NCBI GenBank assembly: GCA_950097015.1 | Contig: CATNEN010000003.1 | Location: forward strand, 7,502,001-7,566,000 | Reading direction: 5' to 3' | Origin: Macrostomum hystrix | Taxonomy: Eukaryota; Animalia; Platyhelminthes | Length of the DNA stretch: 64,000 nucleotides | Shown: positions 869-38,506 of the stretch, piece after piece | How positions within the stretch are numbered: position 1 is the first letter of the stretch | How the letters are laid out: each line of letters starts with the position of its first letter | Made by a program: the position numbers and the translations under genes | Notes under the pieces: model-generated | What the model was told of the DNA's origin: nothing | Seen by the model: only the letters and a program-made list of their open reading frames with translations | The model's database searches: none

Positions 869-1406
869 TGCTTGTTCCATTCTATTAGAAAGTGACGTCA
901 TTTGCTTATGTTAATTCCAATCGATATTTTCACTTTTGATCTGACTATAAGCCATGCTGTTTATTTTAAACTCACAATGGTTTGTTCACTTTCAAATAAA
1001 AGTTATTCATTCTCATTTGTACTGTGCATCAGCATTTGCTGCTAAGTGGATGTGTTACATATAAATATATAATGTTCACATAAAACTTTTATAGCTGTGT
1101 TTCTTGTCGCCAGCACGTTATCTGCTTCTTATACTTTTACTTTTAGATAGCAGAAAAAATCTAATGACAGTTAATCAATCTTCGACTCAGAGAATGTTTA
1201 GGATCGCTGCCTATATTGTAAATATCCTACTCAAATATTCTAGCAGCTGTTCTCAATTTCCTACTCAGGGGATATTTAGGATCTCAAATAGTTACTGATC
1301 CAGTAACCATCATATTTAAAAGCCCCGAAAGACTTGTTCTAGCTGTCAAACTCACTGTTTCAGTGGCCACAGCCATAACAGAAACCTAACGGCCAACTAG
1401 ACAGCC

Positions 1407-2018
1407 ATGGGATTCAAGTCCAGTCCGTTAATCATTGACGCTCGCGGCCACCTACTGGGCCGCCTGGCCTCCATCGTGGCCAAGACCCTCCTGCTTGGCC
1501 AGCGGGTTGTTGTTGTCCGCTGCGAGGGCATTGTGATCTCCGGTTCCTTCTTTCGCAACAAGACCCGCTTCCACGAGTTCCTGCGCAAACGGCTGAACAC
1601 CAACCCCAGCAGGGGTCCGTATCACTTCCGCGCCCCCTCCAAGATCTTCTGGCGCACCGTGCGAGGCATGCTGCCGCACAAGCTGGCCAGAGGCGCCGAA
1701 GCTCTCGACCGCTTGAAGGTGTTCGAGGGCATTCCGAGTCCCTACGACAAGGCCAAGCGTCAGGTTGTGCCATCGGCGTTGAAGTGTCTCCGACTGAAGA
1801 CTCGGCGCAAGTTCTGCGTCCTCGGCCGTCTGTCGCACGAGGTTGGCTGGAAATACCAGGGCGTCATCGGCACTTTGGAGCGTCGGCGCAAGGTCAAATC
1901 GGCCCACTTTCACAAGCGTCAGGTTCGAGACCGCCAGCTGCGCGCCAAAGCCATCGAGAAGGTGAAGGACCGAGTAGCCAAGTATCAGAAGATCATTGAG
2001 TCCTATGGGCACAAGTGA
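1407..2018 (+). CDS. RPL13A: 60S ribosomal protein L13a (uL13), uninterrupted CDS, 203 aa
   Basis: [47 protein letters not shown] and [12 protein letters not shown] are diagnostic; gccATGg start context; AATAAA near 2088. Confidence 0.98.
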
Positions 2019-29001: not shown

Positions 29002-32000
29002 ATGGATGGTGCAACTGTACTTGCTCAAGCTCTGCATTCTCAGGTTTGTAATATCTAGTTAGTTTTTTGTATTTTCTTTAAAATAGTAAAATAAGTACAA
29101 ACATCGTTTTAGAATAAACAATTTTAAACCAATTTTACAACTTCTAGGGCATCGAGTATGCATTTGGCGTTGTTGGCATTCCTGTTGTTGAAGTGGCTGT
29201 CGCTTTTCAAGCTATCGGTATAAAATTTGTTGCCATGCGTAATGAACAGTCTGTAAGTCTGTTGTGACAAAAGAAAATAGTAAATGGTTTTTGCATTGGT
29301 TAATTTATTAATTTGCGTCTTTTAAAACACTCTCAGGCATCTTATGCAGCTTCTGCTATTGGTTACCTGACTGGAAAGTGAGAGCAAAGCTATATTAATT
29401 TAGAAATGAAAATCTAGCTTTCATTGATCTTGAGTAAATTGAAATTGCAGACCCGGAGTTTGTCTAGTCGTGTCTGGTCCAGGCTATGTCCATGCTCTAG
29501 CTGGCCTTTCGAATGCCAATGAAAATTGCTGGTAATAATTTATTTACCTACTGCCTATTTTTGCTTAACCTCAAATCTTCATTTTAGGACTGAAATGCCT
29601 CTTAACTTATCAATTTTGTGACACTAAAATCACCGATAGCCAAGACCCAAGTTTAGAACACTGAAATCCCAGGTTATCCCAAATCCTCAAGTTTAGAACG
29701 CCGTAATTCCAGAATCTAGATCCTCAGGTAATCTAGATCCTCAGGTAATCTAGATCCTCAGGTAATCTAGATCCTCAGGTAATCTAGATCCTCAGGTAAT
29801 CTAGATCCTCAGGTAATCTAGATCCTCAGGTAATCTAGATCCTCAGGTAATCTAGATCCTCAGGTAAACTAGATCCTCAGGTAATCTAGATCCTCAGGTA
29901 ATCTAGATCCTCAGGTAATCTAGATCCTCAGGTAATCTAGATCCTCAGGTAAACTAGATCCTCAGGTAATCTAGATCCTCAGGTACACTAGATCCTCAGG
30001 CAATCTAGATCCTCAGGTAATCTAGATCCTCAGGTAAACTAGATCCTCAGGTAATCTAGATCCTCAGGTACACTAGATCCTCAGGTAATCTAGATCCTCA
30101 GGTTTATAACACCAAAATCCAAAATCCCAGATCCCCAGTTTGAGGCACCAAAATCCCAGATTCCCAGTTTGAGGCACCAAAATCCCAGATCCCCAGTTTG
30201 AGACACCAAAATCCCAGATCCCCAGTCTAAGGCAAAAATCCTAGATCCCCAGTCTAAGAAGCCAAAATCCTAGGTCCTTAGTTTGAGACAACAAAACCCC
30301 AGATCCTCAGTCTGAGATACAAAAATCCCAGATCCTCAGTCTGAGATACAAAAATCCCAGATCCTCAGTCTGAGATACAAAAATCCCAGATCCTCAGTCT
30401 GAGATACAAAAATCCCAGATCCTCAGTCTGAGATACAAAAATCCCAGATCCTCAGTCTGAGATACAAAAATCCCAGATCCTCAGTCTGAGATACAAAAAT
30501 CCCAGATCCTCAGTCTGAGATACAAAAATCCCAGATCCCCAGCCCGAGAAGCTGAAACCCTAAATACTCTATTTCAAGGCACTCAATTTTACCGTATCGA
30601 AAAGTGAGGATTTTTTCAAATAAAACCCGTACTCAATCAATATCTTCATTGCCACAAGGCCGCTAATCGTAATTGGCGGCTCCAGTGATTCACACCTGGA
30701 CGGCAGCGAAGCGTTTCAAGAATTTCCTCAGGTAGCCTCGGCTGCAAGGTTTTGCAAATACTCGGCTAGACTGCCTTCCATTGCTCGAATTCCTCATTTT
30801 GTACACAAGGTGCGCATTTGGTTTAATTAATTAGATCTTTTTTCTGTCTGAATTCCGCTATAAACGAATGTCTCCATTTAATGTAGGCCGTCAAGGAGGC
30901 TACCTACGGCCGCCCTGGCGCTGTTTATCTTGACTTTCCCGGCGACTTTGTGACGTCATCCGTGGACGCCGACGAGATCCAGTAATTAGTCATTATTTCG
31001 ATATTACCTGGATTTTGATGGAATGAAAAGGGCAGTGGGATTTTTTTATTTTAGGGAGATCGTGAAATAAATCAGTTTAGAGACAATTTCGATACAGCTC
31101 TGAGTTTGCAGCCCAGTGGTTACAGCGTCACGCTCTTGACTTGGTGGTTCAGGGTTCGATTCCTGACAGCATAGCTTCTCTGTACACCCTGAACAGCTGT
31201 ACACAGCCCCATCAGGGCAAGAGTGGGATTATTCTGAGACTAGGAATTCTTGAAGGTCGGGGGTTCGATTCCCGACTCCATTGGAACAATTTGCGTCCTT
31301 TAGCAAGACACTTAGCTCTGCATTGCTTCAGTTCACCCAGCTGTTAAATGGGTACCAGCATCAGCTGGGGTAATTGAGAGTGGGTGTGGCGTCCACCCAG
31401 TCCATGGACTGAACAGCCGTACGCAGCCTTCTGATGCGCCGCGCATTAGCTGCGGCTGTGCTGTCGGCTGCACATCTGGCCCGATTCGGACACCAGGTGT
31501 AATAAATAGTACAAATTAAAAAAAGCAGATCCTCATCTGCTTGAATTATTTATCTAATTCTTCAAGATAAATATTTCAAGAAGCATTTTGCCACTCTTAT
31601 CTCCCAGATATCCGCCGCTGCTGCCGCCGCCGCCGGTCGTTTTATCGGATCCAGACAGCGTGCGTCGAGCAGTCGAACTGCTTCGCTCGGCCCACCGTCC
31701 GCTTGTCATCGTCGGCAAAGGCGCCGCTTACGCCAGGGCCGAAGGATCGATTCGCGAGTTTCTAGAAGCCAGCCAACTGCCGTTTCTAGCCACACCCATG
31801 GGCAAAGGCGTGGCCAGCGATCAGCACTCTAACTGCGTGTCAGCTGCTAGAACACGAGCTTTGAAGTCTGCCGACGTTGTTCTGCTGCTGGGCGCCAGGC
31901 TGAATTGGATTCTGCACTTTGGCCGACCACCGCGATGGTCGGCAGATGTCAAGCTTATCCAGGTGTGTTAAGATCCGGGTTGTTTATAAAACTACTGGGT

Positions 32001-35000
32001 GTTTATGAAGCTACTGGGTGTTTATGAAGATACTGGGTGTTTATGAAGATACTGGGTGTTTATGAAGATACTGGGTGTTTATGAAGCTACTGGGTGTTTA
32101 TGAAGATACTGGGTGTTTATGAAGCTACTGGGTGTTTATGAAGCTACTGGGTGTTTATGAAGCTACTGGGTGTTTATGAAGATACTGGGTGTTTATGAAG
32201 ATACTGGGTGTTTATGAAGCTACTGGGTGTTTATGAAGCTACTGGGTGTTTATGAAGCTACTGGGTGTTTATGAAGATACTGGGTGTTTATGAAGATACT
32301 GGGTGTTTATGAAGATACTGGGTGTTTATGAAGCTACTGGGTGTTTATGAAGATACTGGGTGTTTATGAAGATACTGGGTGTTTATGAAGATACTGGGTG
32401 TTTATGAAGATACTGGGTGTTTATGAAGATACTGGGTGTTTATGAAGATACTGGGTGTTTATGAAGATACTGGGTGTTTATGAAGATACTGGGTGTTTAT
32501 GAAGATACTGGGTGTTTATGAAGATACTGGGTGTTTATGAAGCTACTGGGTGTTTATGAAGATACTGGGTGTTTATGAAGCTACTGGGTGTTTATGAAGC
32601 TACTGGGTGTTTATGAAGCTACTGGGTGTTTATGAAGCTACTGGGTGTTTATGAAGATACTGGGTGTTTATGAAGCTACTGGGTGTTTATGAAGCTACTG
32701 GGTGTTTATGAAGCTACTGGGTGTTTATGAAGATACTGGGTGTTTATGAAGATACTGGGTGTTTATGAAGCTACTGGGTGTTTATGAAGATACTGGGTGT
32801 TTATGAAGCTACTGGGTGTTTATGAAGCTACTGGGTGTTTATGAAGATACTGGGTGTTTATGAAGATACTGGGTGTTTATGAAGATACTGGGTGTTTATG
32901 AAGCTACTGGGTGTTTATGAAGATACTGGGTGTTTATGAATATACTGGGTGTTTATGAAGATACTGGGTGTTTATGAAGATACTGGGTGTTTATGAAGAT
33001 ACTGGGTGTTTATGAAGCTACTGGGTGTTTATGAAGATACTGGGTGTTTATGAATATACTGGGTGTTTATGAAGATACTGGGTGTTTATGAAGATACTGG
33101 GTGTTTATGAAGATACTGGGTGTTTATGAAGCTACTGGGTGTTTATGAAGATACTGGGTGTTTATGAAGCTACTGGGTGTTTATGAAGATACTGGGTGTT
33201 TATGAAGCTACTGGGTGTTTATGAAGCTACTGGGTGTTTATAAAACTACTGGGTGTTTATGAAGATACTGGGTGTTTATAAAACTACTGGGTGTTTATGA
33301 AGCTACTGGGTGTTTATAAAACTACTGGGTGTTTATGAAGATACTGGGTGTTTATGAAGCTACTGGGTGTTTATGAAGCTACTGGGTGTTTATGAAGCTA
33401 CTAGGTTTTTATGAAACTACTGGGTGTTTATGAAGCTACTGGGTGTTTATGAAGCTACTAGTGTGATAATGAAGCTACTAGGTGTTTATGAAGCTACTGG
33501 GTGTTTATGAAGCTACTGGGTGTTTATGAAGATACTGGGTGTTTATAAAGCTACAATGTGTTTAGGAAGATCCACGGTGGTTTCTGAAGATTATAGAGGC
33601 TTATGAAAATCCAATTTTTAAGTCGTTTGTTCAGATCCAGTATGGTTATGAAGATGCCGGGTGTTTATGAAGATACTGGGTGTTTATGGAGATCTGCTGT
33701 GATATTTGTGGTTCTTACCTTAATACCTAGACCTAGACCCAAGGTCTAATAGCAAAAAAATATATAATTCTTGTATTTTATAAATTTTCTCAAAGAATCA
33801 ATCATTTCTACGCATTTTGTATGCATACATACTCGTAGATACACAAAATAAGCATTGTTACATACTTGTGAAGTTGTAAAAAAGTAAAGCTGATATATTG
33901 TTTGGAAAGCTAAAAGCTAAACATGTCATAGCACAGCAGAAGTGGATTTTATAATAATGTTTAGCAAAGTGTTGAGTTAAGCTAACTCTCAATCAATGAT
34001 TTGCAAATCGCGTATTAGTAAATACAACAAAAATTATATTATTTCTTAGAAAACGAACATTTTATCGTTTTGTCTAGTTAAAGTAGTATGATACATATGT
34101 AAAGAGTTAAATAAGTTATATTTTTTAAGAAATATCACGGACGGATGATATGAAAATATCATTAAGTATTGTTTTCTAAGCCAAGTAAAAAATTAGAATT
34201 CTATTTCCCCTAAAAAAGAATAGGAACAATAAAACTTGTGCAAAATAGCAACAAACGACCTATAGACTAGATTAAAAAAGAAGGCCTCTTTAAAACTAAA
34301 ATCAGTTGCTATCACGCAGCAACTTTGTTGATCAGGTGTGATAGACTTTGATTACATCCTGTATTGGCTGGCGACAAACAGGGCAAAAATCACGCCTAGA
34401 ATGCAGCAATTGAGCACAGGTGCAGCAGAGGGCCAGGTGGTGACACGGAGACAGCAGGCAGTCTCTGGCACGATCCAGACAGATGGCACACTCTGACTGC
34501 TGCTGATGCTGCAGCTGCTGTTGCATCTGCTGATATTGCAGCAGCTGATGTTGATGCGTCTGGTGCTGACTGTGATTGCCGCTGCCGCCGCCACCGCCGC
34601 CCCAACTCAAACCGAGTGCTGGCACGCTGGGCGCGTGCTCAGACCTACCCAGTCCCGAGCTGAGCTGCAGCTGCTCAAGGACTGCTCGCTTGCGTTCCTC
34701 TCGCTGCTCCTCGTTTAAGATGAGAGGATTGCCGCCGCTGCGAAAGAACAGAGTCTTGCCCATGTCTTCTAGGAGGCGGCGGACACGCTCCGTGGTGGCG
34801 GACGATGTTTCGCGGCTTGGGTTAATTTCGACCTTTAAGGGAAAATGACGAATCCTAACGATTATTCATAGTTGCCAACCACCAAAGGTGGATTTCAACC
34901 ACCAGACCTTCAGGGCATCTCCTGTCTTAACCACCAGACCTTCAGGGCATCTCCTGTCTTAACCACCAGACCTTCAGGGAATCTCCTGTCTTAACCACCA

Positions 35001-38000
35001 GACCTTCAGGGCATCTCCTGTCTTAACCACCAGACCTTCAGGGCATCTCCTGTCTTAACCGCCGGACCTTCAGGGCATCTGCTGTCTCAACCGCCGGACC
35101 TTCAGGGCATCTGCTGTCTCAACCGCCGGACCTTCAGGGCATCTGCTGTCTCAACCACCAGACCTTCAGGGCATCTGCTGTCTCAGCCACCAGACCTTCA
35201 GGGCATTTCCTATTTCAACCATCAGACCTTCAGGGCATTTCGTATTTCAACCGCCAGACCTTCAGGGCATCGCGTATTTCAACCGCCAGATATTCAGGGC
35301 ATCCCTATTTTAACTATCTGACCATCAGGGCATTTCCTGTCTCAACCATCAGACCTTCAGGGCATCTGCTGTCTCAACCACCAGACCTTCAGGGCATCTC
35401 CTGTCTCAACCATCAGACCTTCAGGGCATCTGCTGTCTCAACCACCAGACCTTCAGGGCATATCCTGTCTCAACCACCAGACCTTCAGGACATCTGCGAT
35501 ATCAAATAGCAGACCTTCAGGGCATTAACTATTTCAACCAATAAGATCTTCAGGACAAGATATGATTCATTTAGATCATTGATTAATTAAATTAAATTAA
35601 ATAAATAAATGTCATTAATTTCAATTCGACATGCTTCGTCTATTGACAAATTATTGCAAAGTCACTTGTGAAAAAGTAGCAGACAAAATCACCTCACCTC
35701 AGGTATATAATAGACTGGGAACAGAAATCTCAATCCTAGGCAGCGCTCCCGTTTGGCACACCTGGAGAACACCTCATTGACATCCAGGTGAAGCGTGTTA
35801 CTGCTGATCACAGCATCTGGCTGACACAGATGACTCACTTTCTCCAATAGGTCAGATTTGACTTCAAGATTGTCGTGCACAGCTTCAAAGATAAATTCGG
35901 CGTCTGACACGGTCTCTTCTAGGCGAGAGAGACAGAGAACTTGGCCCGGGAAGGCGCCCTGAATTAGCAGGCCCTCCCGCAGCAGCTCCTGCTTGTCCTC
36001 CTCCATTCGCTGATAGGCGCTGTTTAACACCTCGGCGTTGCTGTCGGTCATTTTTACTCGGTGACCCTGACGAGCTAGCTCGCCGGCGATCTTGCAGCCC
36101 ATTAGGCCACAGCCAATCACGGCGCATTTCACCATCGCTTTGATTGTTAGCTTCCGATTTAGTTCAATTTCGAAAGTCCTAGAGCTCCACGACTGGCAAC
36201 TGTAGAATGCGGTCTATGCAACTAATTTGGCCCGTTTGTAAATGCTGGCTGCACGGCTTGTTGAGGATCATTGCAGATAGACGGAGAGAGATACGAAATG
36301 GACCAATGGGTATGAAAGGCATGAAAGGGGTGGGTAGGAACTCTCTTACCCCCTCGCTCTGTACAGCAGCAGCAGCTAACAGCGCCAGACCCATGATACC
36401 CAGCCCACACGACGAGGTCGATAGAGTTTTCTGGCGGGGCAGTCGTACAACTGACTACTGGCTGCTCTAAGTGCTCGTTCCTCAGATATTTTTGGCGAGA
36501 ATGTACTCAGCCTATTCTCGTACATTATTGAGTGTACTCATTTTGAATTGCAATTCGTAGGAGTTTTTCTACTTATAGTAGAATAAAACATATGCCTTTT
36601 TTCTAATTCTTTTAGGTGGACATTCATCCCGAAGAGTTTCACACCAATGTCAACTGTCAGGTGGCATTGTGCGGCAGTGTTCACGCTGTTGTGGAACAGG
36701 TAAGAACCTAAAAGTTTTAAGGAAGCTTTTAGTCTGGCGCTTGGTCCGCACAAACTTGGTTAGGCGGATAAACTAGCGTAACTTCAAAAAGCTGTGTACA
36801 GGCTGTCAGTCTGTGGACTGTAAATGCCGCAACACCCCATTGGTTTGAGCGCGAACCACTAGAAGTTGAAGGACAGGTCATGGTAAATAACTTTCTTAGA
36901 AGCAGTTTGGAATGTTTAGGAGACTACAGATACTTACTCCATTCTCAGATCAATTATTAACTTTAATTTAGTAAATAGTAGTAAAATTACTAATAGTAGT
37001 AATAAAAGTAGTAATAATAGTAATAATAGTAGTAATAATAGTAGTAGTAATAGTAGTAATCGTAGTAATAATATTAGTAATAAATATTAGTAATAATTAT
37101 AGTAATAAATAGTAGTAAAATTAATAAATTTAGTAAAATTACTTTCTACCCTTCCGCCATAATTATTAACGTAGGCCTATCCCAAAAAATAAAAAAGTGA
37201 AAGTTAAAATTAAAACTATGTTATAATTTTTTCTAAGAAACGCAGATTCCCGCCCAGATTCGAACTCTTGACCTCTCAGTTGAATTGAATAGTGAAATCT
37301 CCCGCAGCTTGTGTCGGCCTTGAATGGTTTCCGATTTGCTACGGAGAGTGACTGGTGGCGCGAACTAAACGAGGCCTCAGCGGCGAATCGAACTCGAGTC
37401 GAAAATTTGGTCGCAGCCGGTCAGACAGTGCCAATGACTTATTATTCGGCGCTGAACGAGTTGGCGCAGTTTCTAGACAGCAGCGACCAGGACTGGCTCA
37501 TTGTTAGCGAAGGCGCCAACACTATGGACATTGGAAGGGCTATGCTGCCTAACAAGCTGGCCAGGAGGCGGTTGGTTAGTTTGGGGCTGGAATCTGCTAG
37601 TGGTGAATTATCATTTTTCGATACATTTCGGGATTCCCATTTTATCCTCATTCCCACACTTATCCCATTCCAAACTTATCCCATTTCAATACTTATCCCC
37701 AATCCCATACTATTCCCCAATCCCATTGGGATGTTTTTAAGACACTACTTGTCCCAATCCTGTCATGAATCCCAAATCCCATATGCATCTCCGTCTTCAG
37801 TTTATCCGTATCGCATTTTATCTCAATCCTCTTCAACTTCCATGTTTAACACAGTCCTATTCTGCAGATCCTATAATTTTTGTGATTTCCTCCGCAGGAT
37901 GCGGGCACATTCGGCACAATGGGTGTGGGTCTCGGCTTCGCAGCCGCCGCCGACCTCTGCCGAGGCGACGCCCGAGCTGCTCACAGTCGGGTGCTGTGCC

Positions 38001-38506
38001 TGGAAGGCGACTCGGCCATCGGGTTCTCGCTAGCGGAGCTCGAGACCCTAGTCCGCTATCGCATGCCCATACTGCTGGTTGTCATCAACAATTCGGGCAT
38101 CTATTCAGGAGTTCCAGCTGACATAGTTCAGCAGCTACTACAGCAGGCCGAACAAGCTTCGCCGACATTGCCAGCCGCGGCCGCACTGGCTCTCCGTCTG
38201 CCAGCGACTTCGTTGAGCACCGAGTGTCGCTACGATCTGGTAGCCGAAGCGCTCGGCGGTTTCGGTCGGCTAGTTCGCAGCGTCCAGGAGCTGCGATCGG
38301 CGCTGGCCGAATTCGTTGAAGTGCGCGACAGGCCCTGCCTGATCAATGTCATCATCGACACCGGAGCCGAAAGGAAGCAGCAGGTGAGATTGCTGTTTTT
38401 TTCTACCCTAATTTCTAATATCAAGGTATAGTAAAGTTTATCTGCAAATTCGTTTCTAATTTTTAATTTCCAGGAGTTCGACTGGCTTTCTAGATCAAAG
38501 CTCTAA
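29002..38506 (+). CDS. HACL1: 2-hydroxyacyl-CoA lyase 1 (TPP-dependent, peroxisomal). Exons 29002-29043, 29148-29252, 29337-29377, 29451-29531, 30659-30809, 30887-30981, 31608-31962, 36616-36699, 37308-37574, 37898-38383, 38474-38506
   Basis: Spliced frame gives [134 protein letters not shown]. All junctions are GT-AG and in phase; the C-terminal SKL is a PTS1. Confidence 0.96.
29712..30103. repeat. 17-bp minisatellite (aatctagatcctcaggt)n in HACL1 intron 4
   Basis: About 23 tandem units. Confidence 0.96.
30110..30545. repeat. 29-bp minisatellite (aaaatcccagatcctcagtctgagataca)n
   Basis: Tandem units; shares the agatcctcag core with the adjacent 17-mer. Confidence 0.93.
31105..31505 (+). 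mobile_element. tRNA-derived SINE, family 1 (CORE-like body), with two successive B-box heads
   Basis: ggttcgattcc at 31153 and 31262; the body cctttagcaagacacttagctctgcattgcttcagttcacccagctgttaaatgggtacc matches 60590-60655. Confidence 0.8.
31978..33560. repeat. 19-bp minisatellite (tttatgaagatactgggtg)n at the start of HACL1 intron 7
   Basis: About 80 tandem units with two interspersed variants (aagat/aagct). Confidence 0.97.
34332..36135 (-). CDS. Nested gene: 3-hydroxyacyl-CoA dehydrogenase-like NAD-binding domain fused to a C-terminal C3HC4 RING finger, 312 aa. Exons 36135-35698 and 34832-34332
   Basis: GCGLMG Rossmann motif, [16 protein letters not shown]. The phase-0 splice GAG|gtgagg...cccttaaag|GTC restores PVYYIPE|[19 protein letters not shown]. 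The frame continues through a polyQ linker to [37 protein letters not shown]. Confidence 0.9.
34895..35545. repeat. 32-bp minisatellite (aaccaccagaccttcagggcatctcctgtctt)n filling the nested gene's intron
   Basis: About 20 tandem units. Confidence 0.95.

Follow-up and report, generated by a model that had tools for sequence, protein, structure and literature searches.

RESULTS

A two-exon gene joins a dehydrogenase-like domain to a RING

A 64,000-nucleotide (nt) stretch of the genome of the flatworm Macrostomum hystrix (assembly GCA_950097015.1, contig CATNEN010000003.1, positions 7,502,001 to 7,566,000 of the forward strand), referred to here as the window, contains a minus-strand gene whose product combines an N-terminal domain of the 3-hydroxyacyl-CoA dehydrogenase (HAD) type with a C-terminal RING. 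Reading of the sequence gave two exons, 36135-35698 and 34832-34332, with a total of 312 codons; the underlying open reading frames (ORFs) are 35689-36135(-) and 34332-34763(-). A first-pass annotation of the window had proposed that these two ORFs are joined through one GT-AG intron into a protein of 312 amino acids (aa), and both the exon reading and the splice contigs described below agree with this model. The start codon at 36135 is an ATG and is the earliest ATG, GTG or TTG downstream of the in-frame stop in an open frame of 174 aa, while the stop codon is located at 34334-34332.

The coding part of exon 1 (35698..36135) specifies aa 1 to 146, the bulk of the HAD-type Rossmann domain. Direct reading located the dinucleotide-binding GxGxxG motif, in the form GCGLMG, at aa 8 to 13 (36097..36114), an Asp31 ending the string VKMTD and a ten-residue segment at aa 84 to 93. 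The string SNTL (aa 112 to 115) places the codon of Leu115 (35791..35793) at the column of the HAD catalytic Ser137, and an AGA codon for Arg136 (35728..35730) occupies the column of the HAD catalytic His, as shown by alignment with the GMHFFNP of Hbd enzymes of solved structure. The intron (34833..35697) is 865 nt long, of phase 0 and of the GT..AG class, with a GTGAGG donor at 35697 and an acceptor ending in TTAAAG at 34834-34833; the protein reads IPE|VEI across the exon junction. The coding part of exon 2 (34332..34832) specifies aa 147 to 312 (166 codons) and the stop, and comprises the remainder of the Rossmann domain, including Glu148, followed by a charged helix, a linker made up of a Gly run and then a His/Gln-rich tract (exon 2 aa 65 to 110; 34503..34640) and a C3HC4 RING of the IAP/MDM2/Mind-bomb type (exon 2 aa 112 to 160; 34353..34499).

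Only one locus in the 220-Mb genome (42 contigs) closely matches either exon, indicating a single-copy gene. In the search with exon 2, the remaining RING matches in the genome were at most 40% identical. The sole other HAD-like match of exon 1 was to a CRYL1-like gene on another contig (C33, approximately 1924788-1925228; excerpt 1267-1965, minus strand), which keeps the His in a canonical AHPINPP..LVE and looks like an ordinary enzyme.

A transcript contig spans the complete reading frame

Transcript support was obtained from the contigs of four public runs of one study. The type of these runs is not recorded as RNA; they were taken to be transcriptome assemblies because three introns in two genes of opposite strands were cleanly removed and because cover of introns and intergenic sequence was absent or patchy. 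The first-pass annotation had named the 35698/34832 junction as the point to be checked, and this joint (placed by the alignment at 34830/35696, with the cut displaced by +2) was present in contigs of all four runs, the CT..AC ends on the plus strand corresponding to GT..AG on the minus strand. Contig X2 (1,155 nt) covers 34257-34830 and 35696-36276 with zero mismatches and, therefore, contains the complete reading frame and both untranslated regions (UTRs). The minimum extent of the 5' UTR, set by X2, is 36136..36276 and that of the 3' UTR is 34257..34331, with contig X1 reaching 34140. As the contigs come from a single study, they demonstrate the presence of the transcript and not its level or exact ends. 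The two-exon gene is real and expressed.

A 59-nt skip (34517-34577) in run X1 was considered as a possible isoform and rejected. The ends of this skip are non-canonical (CT..AT), only 21 nt were aligned on its shorter side and its depth of 27.9 does not match the depth of the contigs of the gene itself; it was taken as a chimeric join in CAG-rich low-complexity sequence. Separately, CAG-rich contigs from other transcripts partly overlie the linker and produce loose ends at 34497-34601.

Domain architecture and predicted fold

The exons were searched singly, and the orthologue from Macrostomum lignano (P0221, 309 aa) served as a full-length stand-in for the window protein. P0221 is collinear with the gene across the exon junction, being 95% identical over residues 1 to 146 (exon 1) and 78% identical over residues 147 to 309 (exon 2), and its final 50 residues are identical to those encoded in the window. 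The level of identity suggests that the window comes from a close Macrostomum relative of M. lignano. Exon 1 matched Pfam 3HCDH_N (5.4e-29; positions 2 to 145 of the 180 of the profile), and the end of exon 2 matched zf-C3HC4_3 (7.8e-13, with 48.5 bits where the cut-off is 27). Neither exon had a Pfam match to PF00725 (3HCDH), the HAD C-terminal domain, and nor had the full-length homologues P0221, P0004, P0039 and P0083. These searches and the motifs read directly bore out the architecture put forward in the first-pass annotation, namely, an N-terminal HAD NAD-binding domain with GCGLMG and an Asp at the end of strand 2, loss of the HAD C-terminal domain and, in its place, a charged helix, a Gly/His/Gln linker and a C3HC4 RING of the IAP/Neuralized/Mind-bomb type.

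An AlphaFold2 model of P0221, built from a 44-row alignment, had a mean predicted local distance difference test (pLDDT) score of 89. Residues 1 to 204, comprising the Rossmann domain and the helix that follows it, scored >90, the linker (214 to 238) scored <50, and the helix at 237 to 254 and the RING were again confident, so that the confident parts comprise residues 1 to 204 and 251 to 309. Foldseek superposed this model on the Clostridium Hbd structure 4kue at 1.9 A over 189 columns, with further matches to CRYL1 and human HADH. In the predicted structure, only the first (long) helix of the HAD C-terminal domain appears to be left after the Rossmann domain. The Gly/His/Gln-rich linker is common to both Macrostomum species, with insertions and deletions, and is absent in other phyla; most bilaterian orthologues have in its place a short conserved motif with the consensus P.L.H.GN.

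The family is distributed from choanoflagellates to amphioxus and appears to have a single origin

An exhaustive phmmer search with exon 1 against 1.84 billion cluster representatives yielded 5,624 matches, 8 of them below 1e-30. About 40 clusters from this search belonged to the family, and a C-terminal RING was present in 34 of the best 150 of the 5,624 matches. A word-indexed search with a snail query recovered approximately 95 family proteins; the next matches, to ordinary bacterial Hbd enzymes, were set apart from these by a drop in score from 9e-37 to 4e-18. The corresponding ESM Atlas cluster has 152 members, all of them eukaryotic and 100% of them with both Pfam domains. Among non-bilaterians, named members were found in choanoflagellates (Salpingoeca), sponges (Oscarella, Sycon and Halichondria) and cnidarians (a coral and two jellyfish). 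Protostome members came from molluscs, annelids, a brachiopod, nemerteans, rotifers, flatworms and a priapulid, as well as from chelicerates (a sea spider, a horseshoe crab and a mite), myriapods (a centipede and a millipede) and a barnacle; the deuterostomes were represented by echinoderms, hemichordates and amphioxus. Identity between phyla was 50 to 60%. No vertebrate, insect or nematode member was present among the nameable clusters, several clusters consisting of anonymous environmental or Logan transcripts; the family is probably absent from these three groups. All of the source names were automatic ("3-hydroxybutyryl-CoA dehydrogenase-like," "RING-type domain-containing protein" and "lambda-crystallin homolog").

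These data bear on whether the fusion could be an artefact in which neighbouring genes, or a processed copy, were wrongly joined. The provenance of the four runs, all of one study and none recorded as RNA, would allow for such an error, but the GT..AG intron is removed in every one of them, a single contig spans the full reading frame, and more than 100 homologues from many phyla carry the two domains in one protein that is continuous through IPE|VEI. The splice contigs and the homologues refute a mis-joined gene model for practical purposes; we rejected it, attaching to it a negligible probability, and regard it as virtually certain that the window contains a real, conserved gene in which a HAD N-terminal domain with the Arg substitution is combined with a RING.

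The relationship of the family to the enzymes was examined with a tree of the N-terminal domains of 119 hits (IQ-TREE, LG+C20, quick search). The 34 RING-bearing proteins and six Arg-bearing fragments or truncated models formed one side of a branch with a Shimodaira-Hasegawa-like approximate likelihood ratio (SH-aLRT) support of 99, and all 79 canonical HADs fell outside it. This topology argues for a single origin of the family. P0221 falls inside this RING-family clade of 40, and the window gene is an ordinary orthologue within the family.

Several deposited proteins deviate from the common architecture. P0004, from the millipede Chamberlinius, has a PX domain in front of the HAD N-terminal domain and the RING, and P0083, from an environmental eukaryote and represented by three contigs, has a protein kinase domain in this position. 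These additions fit a portable effector module, or they may be due to fused gene models. Conversely, P0030 (Salpingoeca rosetta, 220 aa) and P0019 (Halichondria, 214 aa) are members of the clade that have the Arg and are without a RING in the deposited models, being either truncated predictions or genuine stand-alone pseudo-HAD domains. If genuine, they would bear on the order of events, with the Arg arising first and the RING later.

Catalytic residues are replaced while dinucleotide-contacting residues are retained

Columns were counted in 40 family members and 79 canonical HADs, using the numbering of P0221; HADH residue numbers were mapped by means of a gap-free alignment to Hbd and the known HADH sequence. 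The column of the catalytic His contained Arg in 39 family members and Gln in one, as compared to His in 76 of the 79 canonical enzymes. The catalytic Ser (HADH Ser137; 76/79 in canonical HADs) was never Ser in the family, the column being occupied by Leu (26 members), Met (11), Ile (2) or His (1). At the Asn of FFNP, 33 of the 40 members had Tyr, Phe or His, while the canonical enzymes had Asn (48) or Ser (14). The first-pass annotation had reported that the catalytic His is replaced by Arg while the partner Glu 12 residues later is kept, and that SNTS reads SNTL; the AGA codon of Arg136, Glu148 and Leu115 all agreed with that reading. It had also advised examining orthologues for conservation of the His-to-Arg change and of the RING, and the Arg proved to be nearly universal in a group that is monophyletic from choanoflagellates to amphioxus.

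A different pattern was observed for the remaining residues. The Glu of the dyad (Glu148, HADH Glu170), located 12 residues past the His column, was present in 39/40 family members and 79/79 canonical HADs, and both Glu84 and Lys93 were invariant in the two groups (40/40 and 79/79 for each residue). Asp31 was conserved in 38/40 family members, as compared to 56 Asp and 14 Glu among the canonical enzymes, and the three Gly residues of GxGxxG were present in 40/40, 40/40 and 40/41 rows of the 44-row family alignment. The position of HADH Asn208 was variable in the family (Ser, Thr or Asn). PDB titles list human HADH mutants E110Q, S137A/C, E170Q and N208S, indicating that these residues have been studied as functional. 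The comparison shows a selective pattern in which residues that contact the dinucleotide or support the fold are kept at the level seen in the enzymes and those acting on the 3-hydroxyacyl group are consistently replaced. As the Ser and His changes, the retained Glu and the absence of the C-terminal domain recur throughout a single clade, the domain is regarded as a constrained pseudo-dehydrogenase rather than a decaying relic. Dozens of invertebrate entries bear the automatic label "3-hydroxybutyryl-CoA dehydrogenase-like," which misleads, as the catalytic Ser and His are gone.

Few parts of the family alignment are as well conserved as the block that surrounds the former active site, as would be expected if the site still worked, and the family has gained two conserved charged residues, Glu146 and Arg177; together, the conservation and the gained charges point to a site that probably still does something. 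One explanation is that the protein remains an oxidoreductase fused to a RING, with Arg136 and Glu148 standing in for the His-Glu dyad and with an altered reaction or substrate. Arg is the catalytic base in a few enzymes, the family has kept the dinucleotide residues and the dyad Glu almost without exception, and conservation of the cleft is strong, all of which would suit such an enzyme. However, the Ser137, His158 and Asn161 positions have all been replaced (by Leu/Met, Arg and aromatic residues, respectively), the Asn208 position varies, and the protein has none of the C-terminal domain with which HADs close the substrate cleft and dimerise, so that we consider retained oxidoreductase activity improbable. 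If it were true, the ligase would carry a working enzyme instead of a sensor.

A second explanation is that the Rossmann domain binds no nucleotide and is a protein-protein docking or scaffold module through which the RING would be supplied with substrates. Loss of ligand binding is common among pseudoenzymes, and in some lineages the cassette is joined to other targeting domains (PX in the millipede and a kinase in the environmental eukaryote). The retention of GxGxxG, the strand-2 Asp, Glu84 and Lys93 from choanoflagellates to animals at the level of active enzymes is, however, hard to explain without a dinucleotide, and a pure docking role seems unlikely, albeit less so than an altered enzyme. 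Binding of a dinucleotide by the Rossmann domain is the more probable outcome of these residue counts, although considerable doubt attaches to it.

An Arg at the His column was also observed outside the family. P0096, a 326-aa bacterial HAD-family protein from a metagenome-assembled genome (Desulfatitalea sp.), has this substitution (GARFGNPPYLIPLVE) without a RING. This protein, counted among the 79 canonical HADs of the tree, lies outside the RING clade, indicating that the His-to-Arg change arose independently there.

The RING retains residues associated with ubiquitin transfer

The eight Zn ligands of the RING are present in C3HC4 order, with Cys/His columns at least 90% conserved in the family alignment. 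The linchpin Arg that follows the last Cys (CPxCR) was found in 43/43 family sequences and an aromatic residue (Tyr or Phe) at the third position from the C-terminal end in 42/43. With the orthologue P0221 as the query, the closest solved RINGs by sequence were those of MDM2, MGRN1 and MIB1 (RING3). In BIRC7, RNF4 and MDM2, the linchpin Arg and the C-terminal aromatic are required to lock the conjugate of ubiquitin and the ubiquitin-conjugating enzyme (E2~ubiquitin) in a closed state, the aromatic acting across the RING dimer; the BIRC7 equivalents are Arg286 and Phe296, with the aromatic touching ubiquitin across this dimer. The residues that activate E2~ubiquitin are kept in the family RING, and these proteins are likely to be active ubiquitin ligases (E3s).

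The gene is nested in a gene for a thiamine-diphosphate enzyme

The gene lies antisense within an intron of its neighbour on the plus strand, a gene belonging to the 2-hydroxyacyl-CoA lyase (HACL1)/oxalyl-CoA decarboxylase family. The exon of this neighbour that precedes the nested gene is at 31588 to approximately 31963-31968 (TPP_enzyme_M, 3e-26), and those that follow are at 36614-36696, 37305-37573 and 37897-38431 (TPP_enzyme_C, 2.9e-15). The best PDB matches were 2c31 and 6xn8 (oxalyl-CoA decarboxylase and HACL1), and the product is predicted from these matches to be a thiamine-diphosphate enzyme. The transcript contigs described above also show GT..AG splicing of its exons, with two introns of this neighbour removed, and its word depth is approximately 3- to 4-fold that of the nested gene.

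Most of the only intron of the nested gene is occupied by a minisatellite (34895..35525) with a period of 32 bp, 19.8 copies and 90% matches, as detected by Tandem Repeats Finder. A Val codon (GTC) stands directly after this phase-0, minisatellite-bearing intron.

DISCUSSION

The structure and expression of the gene, its architecture and fold, the family-wide conservation and the single origin of the family can be regarded as established. The reading that we favor, with a probability of roughly 0.6, is that the window gene is a member of an ancient holozoan family of RING E3 ligases that have a pseudo-dehydrogenase, probably NAD(H)-binding, module. NAD(H) binding, ligase activity and the coupling of the two are what we infer from the conserved residues. 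The N-terminal residues (approximately 185) constitute a HAD-derived Rossmann domain in which the dinucleotide residues were kept and the changes of Ser to Leu/Met and of His to Arg became fixed; with the C-terminal domain, responsible for dimerisation and for the acyl-CoA cleft, lost as well, we read it as a pseudo-dehydrogenase. This domain would most probably hold NAD(H) or a related ADP-containing ligand without turnover of hydroxyacyl-CoA. The retained helix and the variable linker tether it to the C-terminal IAP/MDM2/Mind-bomb-type RING; the proposed working has the Rossmann module acting as a ligand-gated or substrate-recognition unit and the RING transferring ubiquitin, such that the ligand state or a bound partner may be coupled to ubiquitin transfer.

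The first-pass annotation had suggested a sensor of a dinucleotide or acyl-CoA, or else a substrate adaptor. Of the two ligands, NAD(H) is favored by the invariant dinucleotide-binding residues; sensing of acyl-CoA is less likely, as half of the acyl-CoA cleft was lost together with the C-terminal domain. Control of the ligase output by the state of the ligand is conceivable but doubtful. A more specific version, in which the family represents an NAD(H)-gated ligase ancestral to holozoans and substrate capture or RING activity is switched according to whether the dinucleotide pocket is filled, or to its redox state, as sensed by the invariant Arg136 and Glu148, is speculative and somewhat less likely still. 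A bolder variant would have NAD+ used chemically at the E2~ubiquitin conjugate, in the manner of Deltex.

Several points weigh against the ligase reading set out above. The function of every family member is predicted from sequence and modelled structure, and conservation of the Rossmann residues may reflect the stability of the fold instead of ligand binding. The searches of the window protein rest on separate exons and on P0221 as a proxy, and the transcript support comes from one study and consists of contigs instead of raw reads. A two-copy complex prediction for P0221 residues 236 to 309 (the RING with its helix), addressing RING homodimerisation, scored 0.28, below the mark of 0.32, and was counted neither for nor against.

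Comparison with known systems helps to define what is new. The family resembles HADH, Hbd, the dehydrogenase part of MFE1 and CRYL1 in its N-terminal Rossmann fold, GxGxxG, strand-2 Asp, Glu84, Lys93 and dyad Glu. It differs from these enzymes in having Arg for His, Leu/Met for Ser and an aromatic for the Asn of FFNP, in the absence of PF00725 and in the presence of a C-terminal RING. With the RING E3s of the IAP, MDM2, Mind-bomb and MGRN1 types it shares a C3HC4 RING at the extreme C terminus, the Arg of CPxCR and a Tyr/Phe near the end, but it is without a BIR, p53-binding, MIB/HERC2 or other known substrate domain, the partner of the RING being a pseudo-dehydrogenase. What defines a RING ligase is the target that its non-RING domains bind.

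There are two sets of precedents for the concept. CtBP, NmrA/HSCARG, bacterial Rex and the KTN/TrkA-N domains are Rossmann-type pseudo-dehydrogenases that act as NAD(P)H sensors. In each, a domain derived from a dehydrogenase keeps dinucleotide binding and reports to an effector, a likeness in concept, as sensing is hypothetical in the present family; to our knowledge, these proteins stem from other dehydrogenase families and do not carry a RING. The Deltex/DTX3L RING-DTC ligases have a RING beside an NAD+-binding module in one polypeptide. The DTC domain, however, has a fold other than the Rossmann fold and uses up NAD+ in ADP-ribosylating ubiquitin, and nothing in the present family indicates such chemistry. 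We know of no characterised RING ligase that has a dehydrogenase-derived dinucleotide pocket as its non-RING domain. A full-text search, the coverage of which did not extend to most subscription journals, found no paper on the architecture. The statement of the first-pass annotation that it knew of no characterised protein with this architecture agrees with this result, but the architecture itself is already in the databases, with well over 100 automatically annotated members. What appears to be new is a putative RING E3 with an unprecedented pseudo-dehydrogenase as its partner domain, in an architecture that had been catalogued automatically.

From choanoflagellates to the majority of animal lineages, the fusion has changed very little, implying an important function. 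The usual model organisms cannot reveal this function because no member has been seen in vertebrates, insects or nematodes, and the apparent absence from these groups would explain why the family has stayed unstudied. The family is a candidate for a link between a metabolite and ubiquitin and, if the NAD(H)-gated reading is true, the redox state or the state of fatty acid metabolism would be tied directly to protein ubiquitination.

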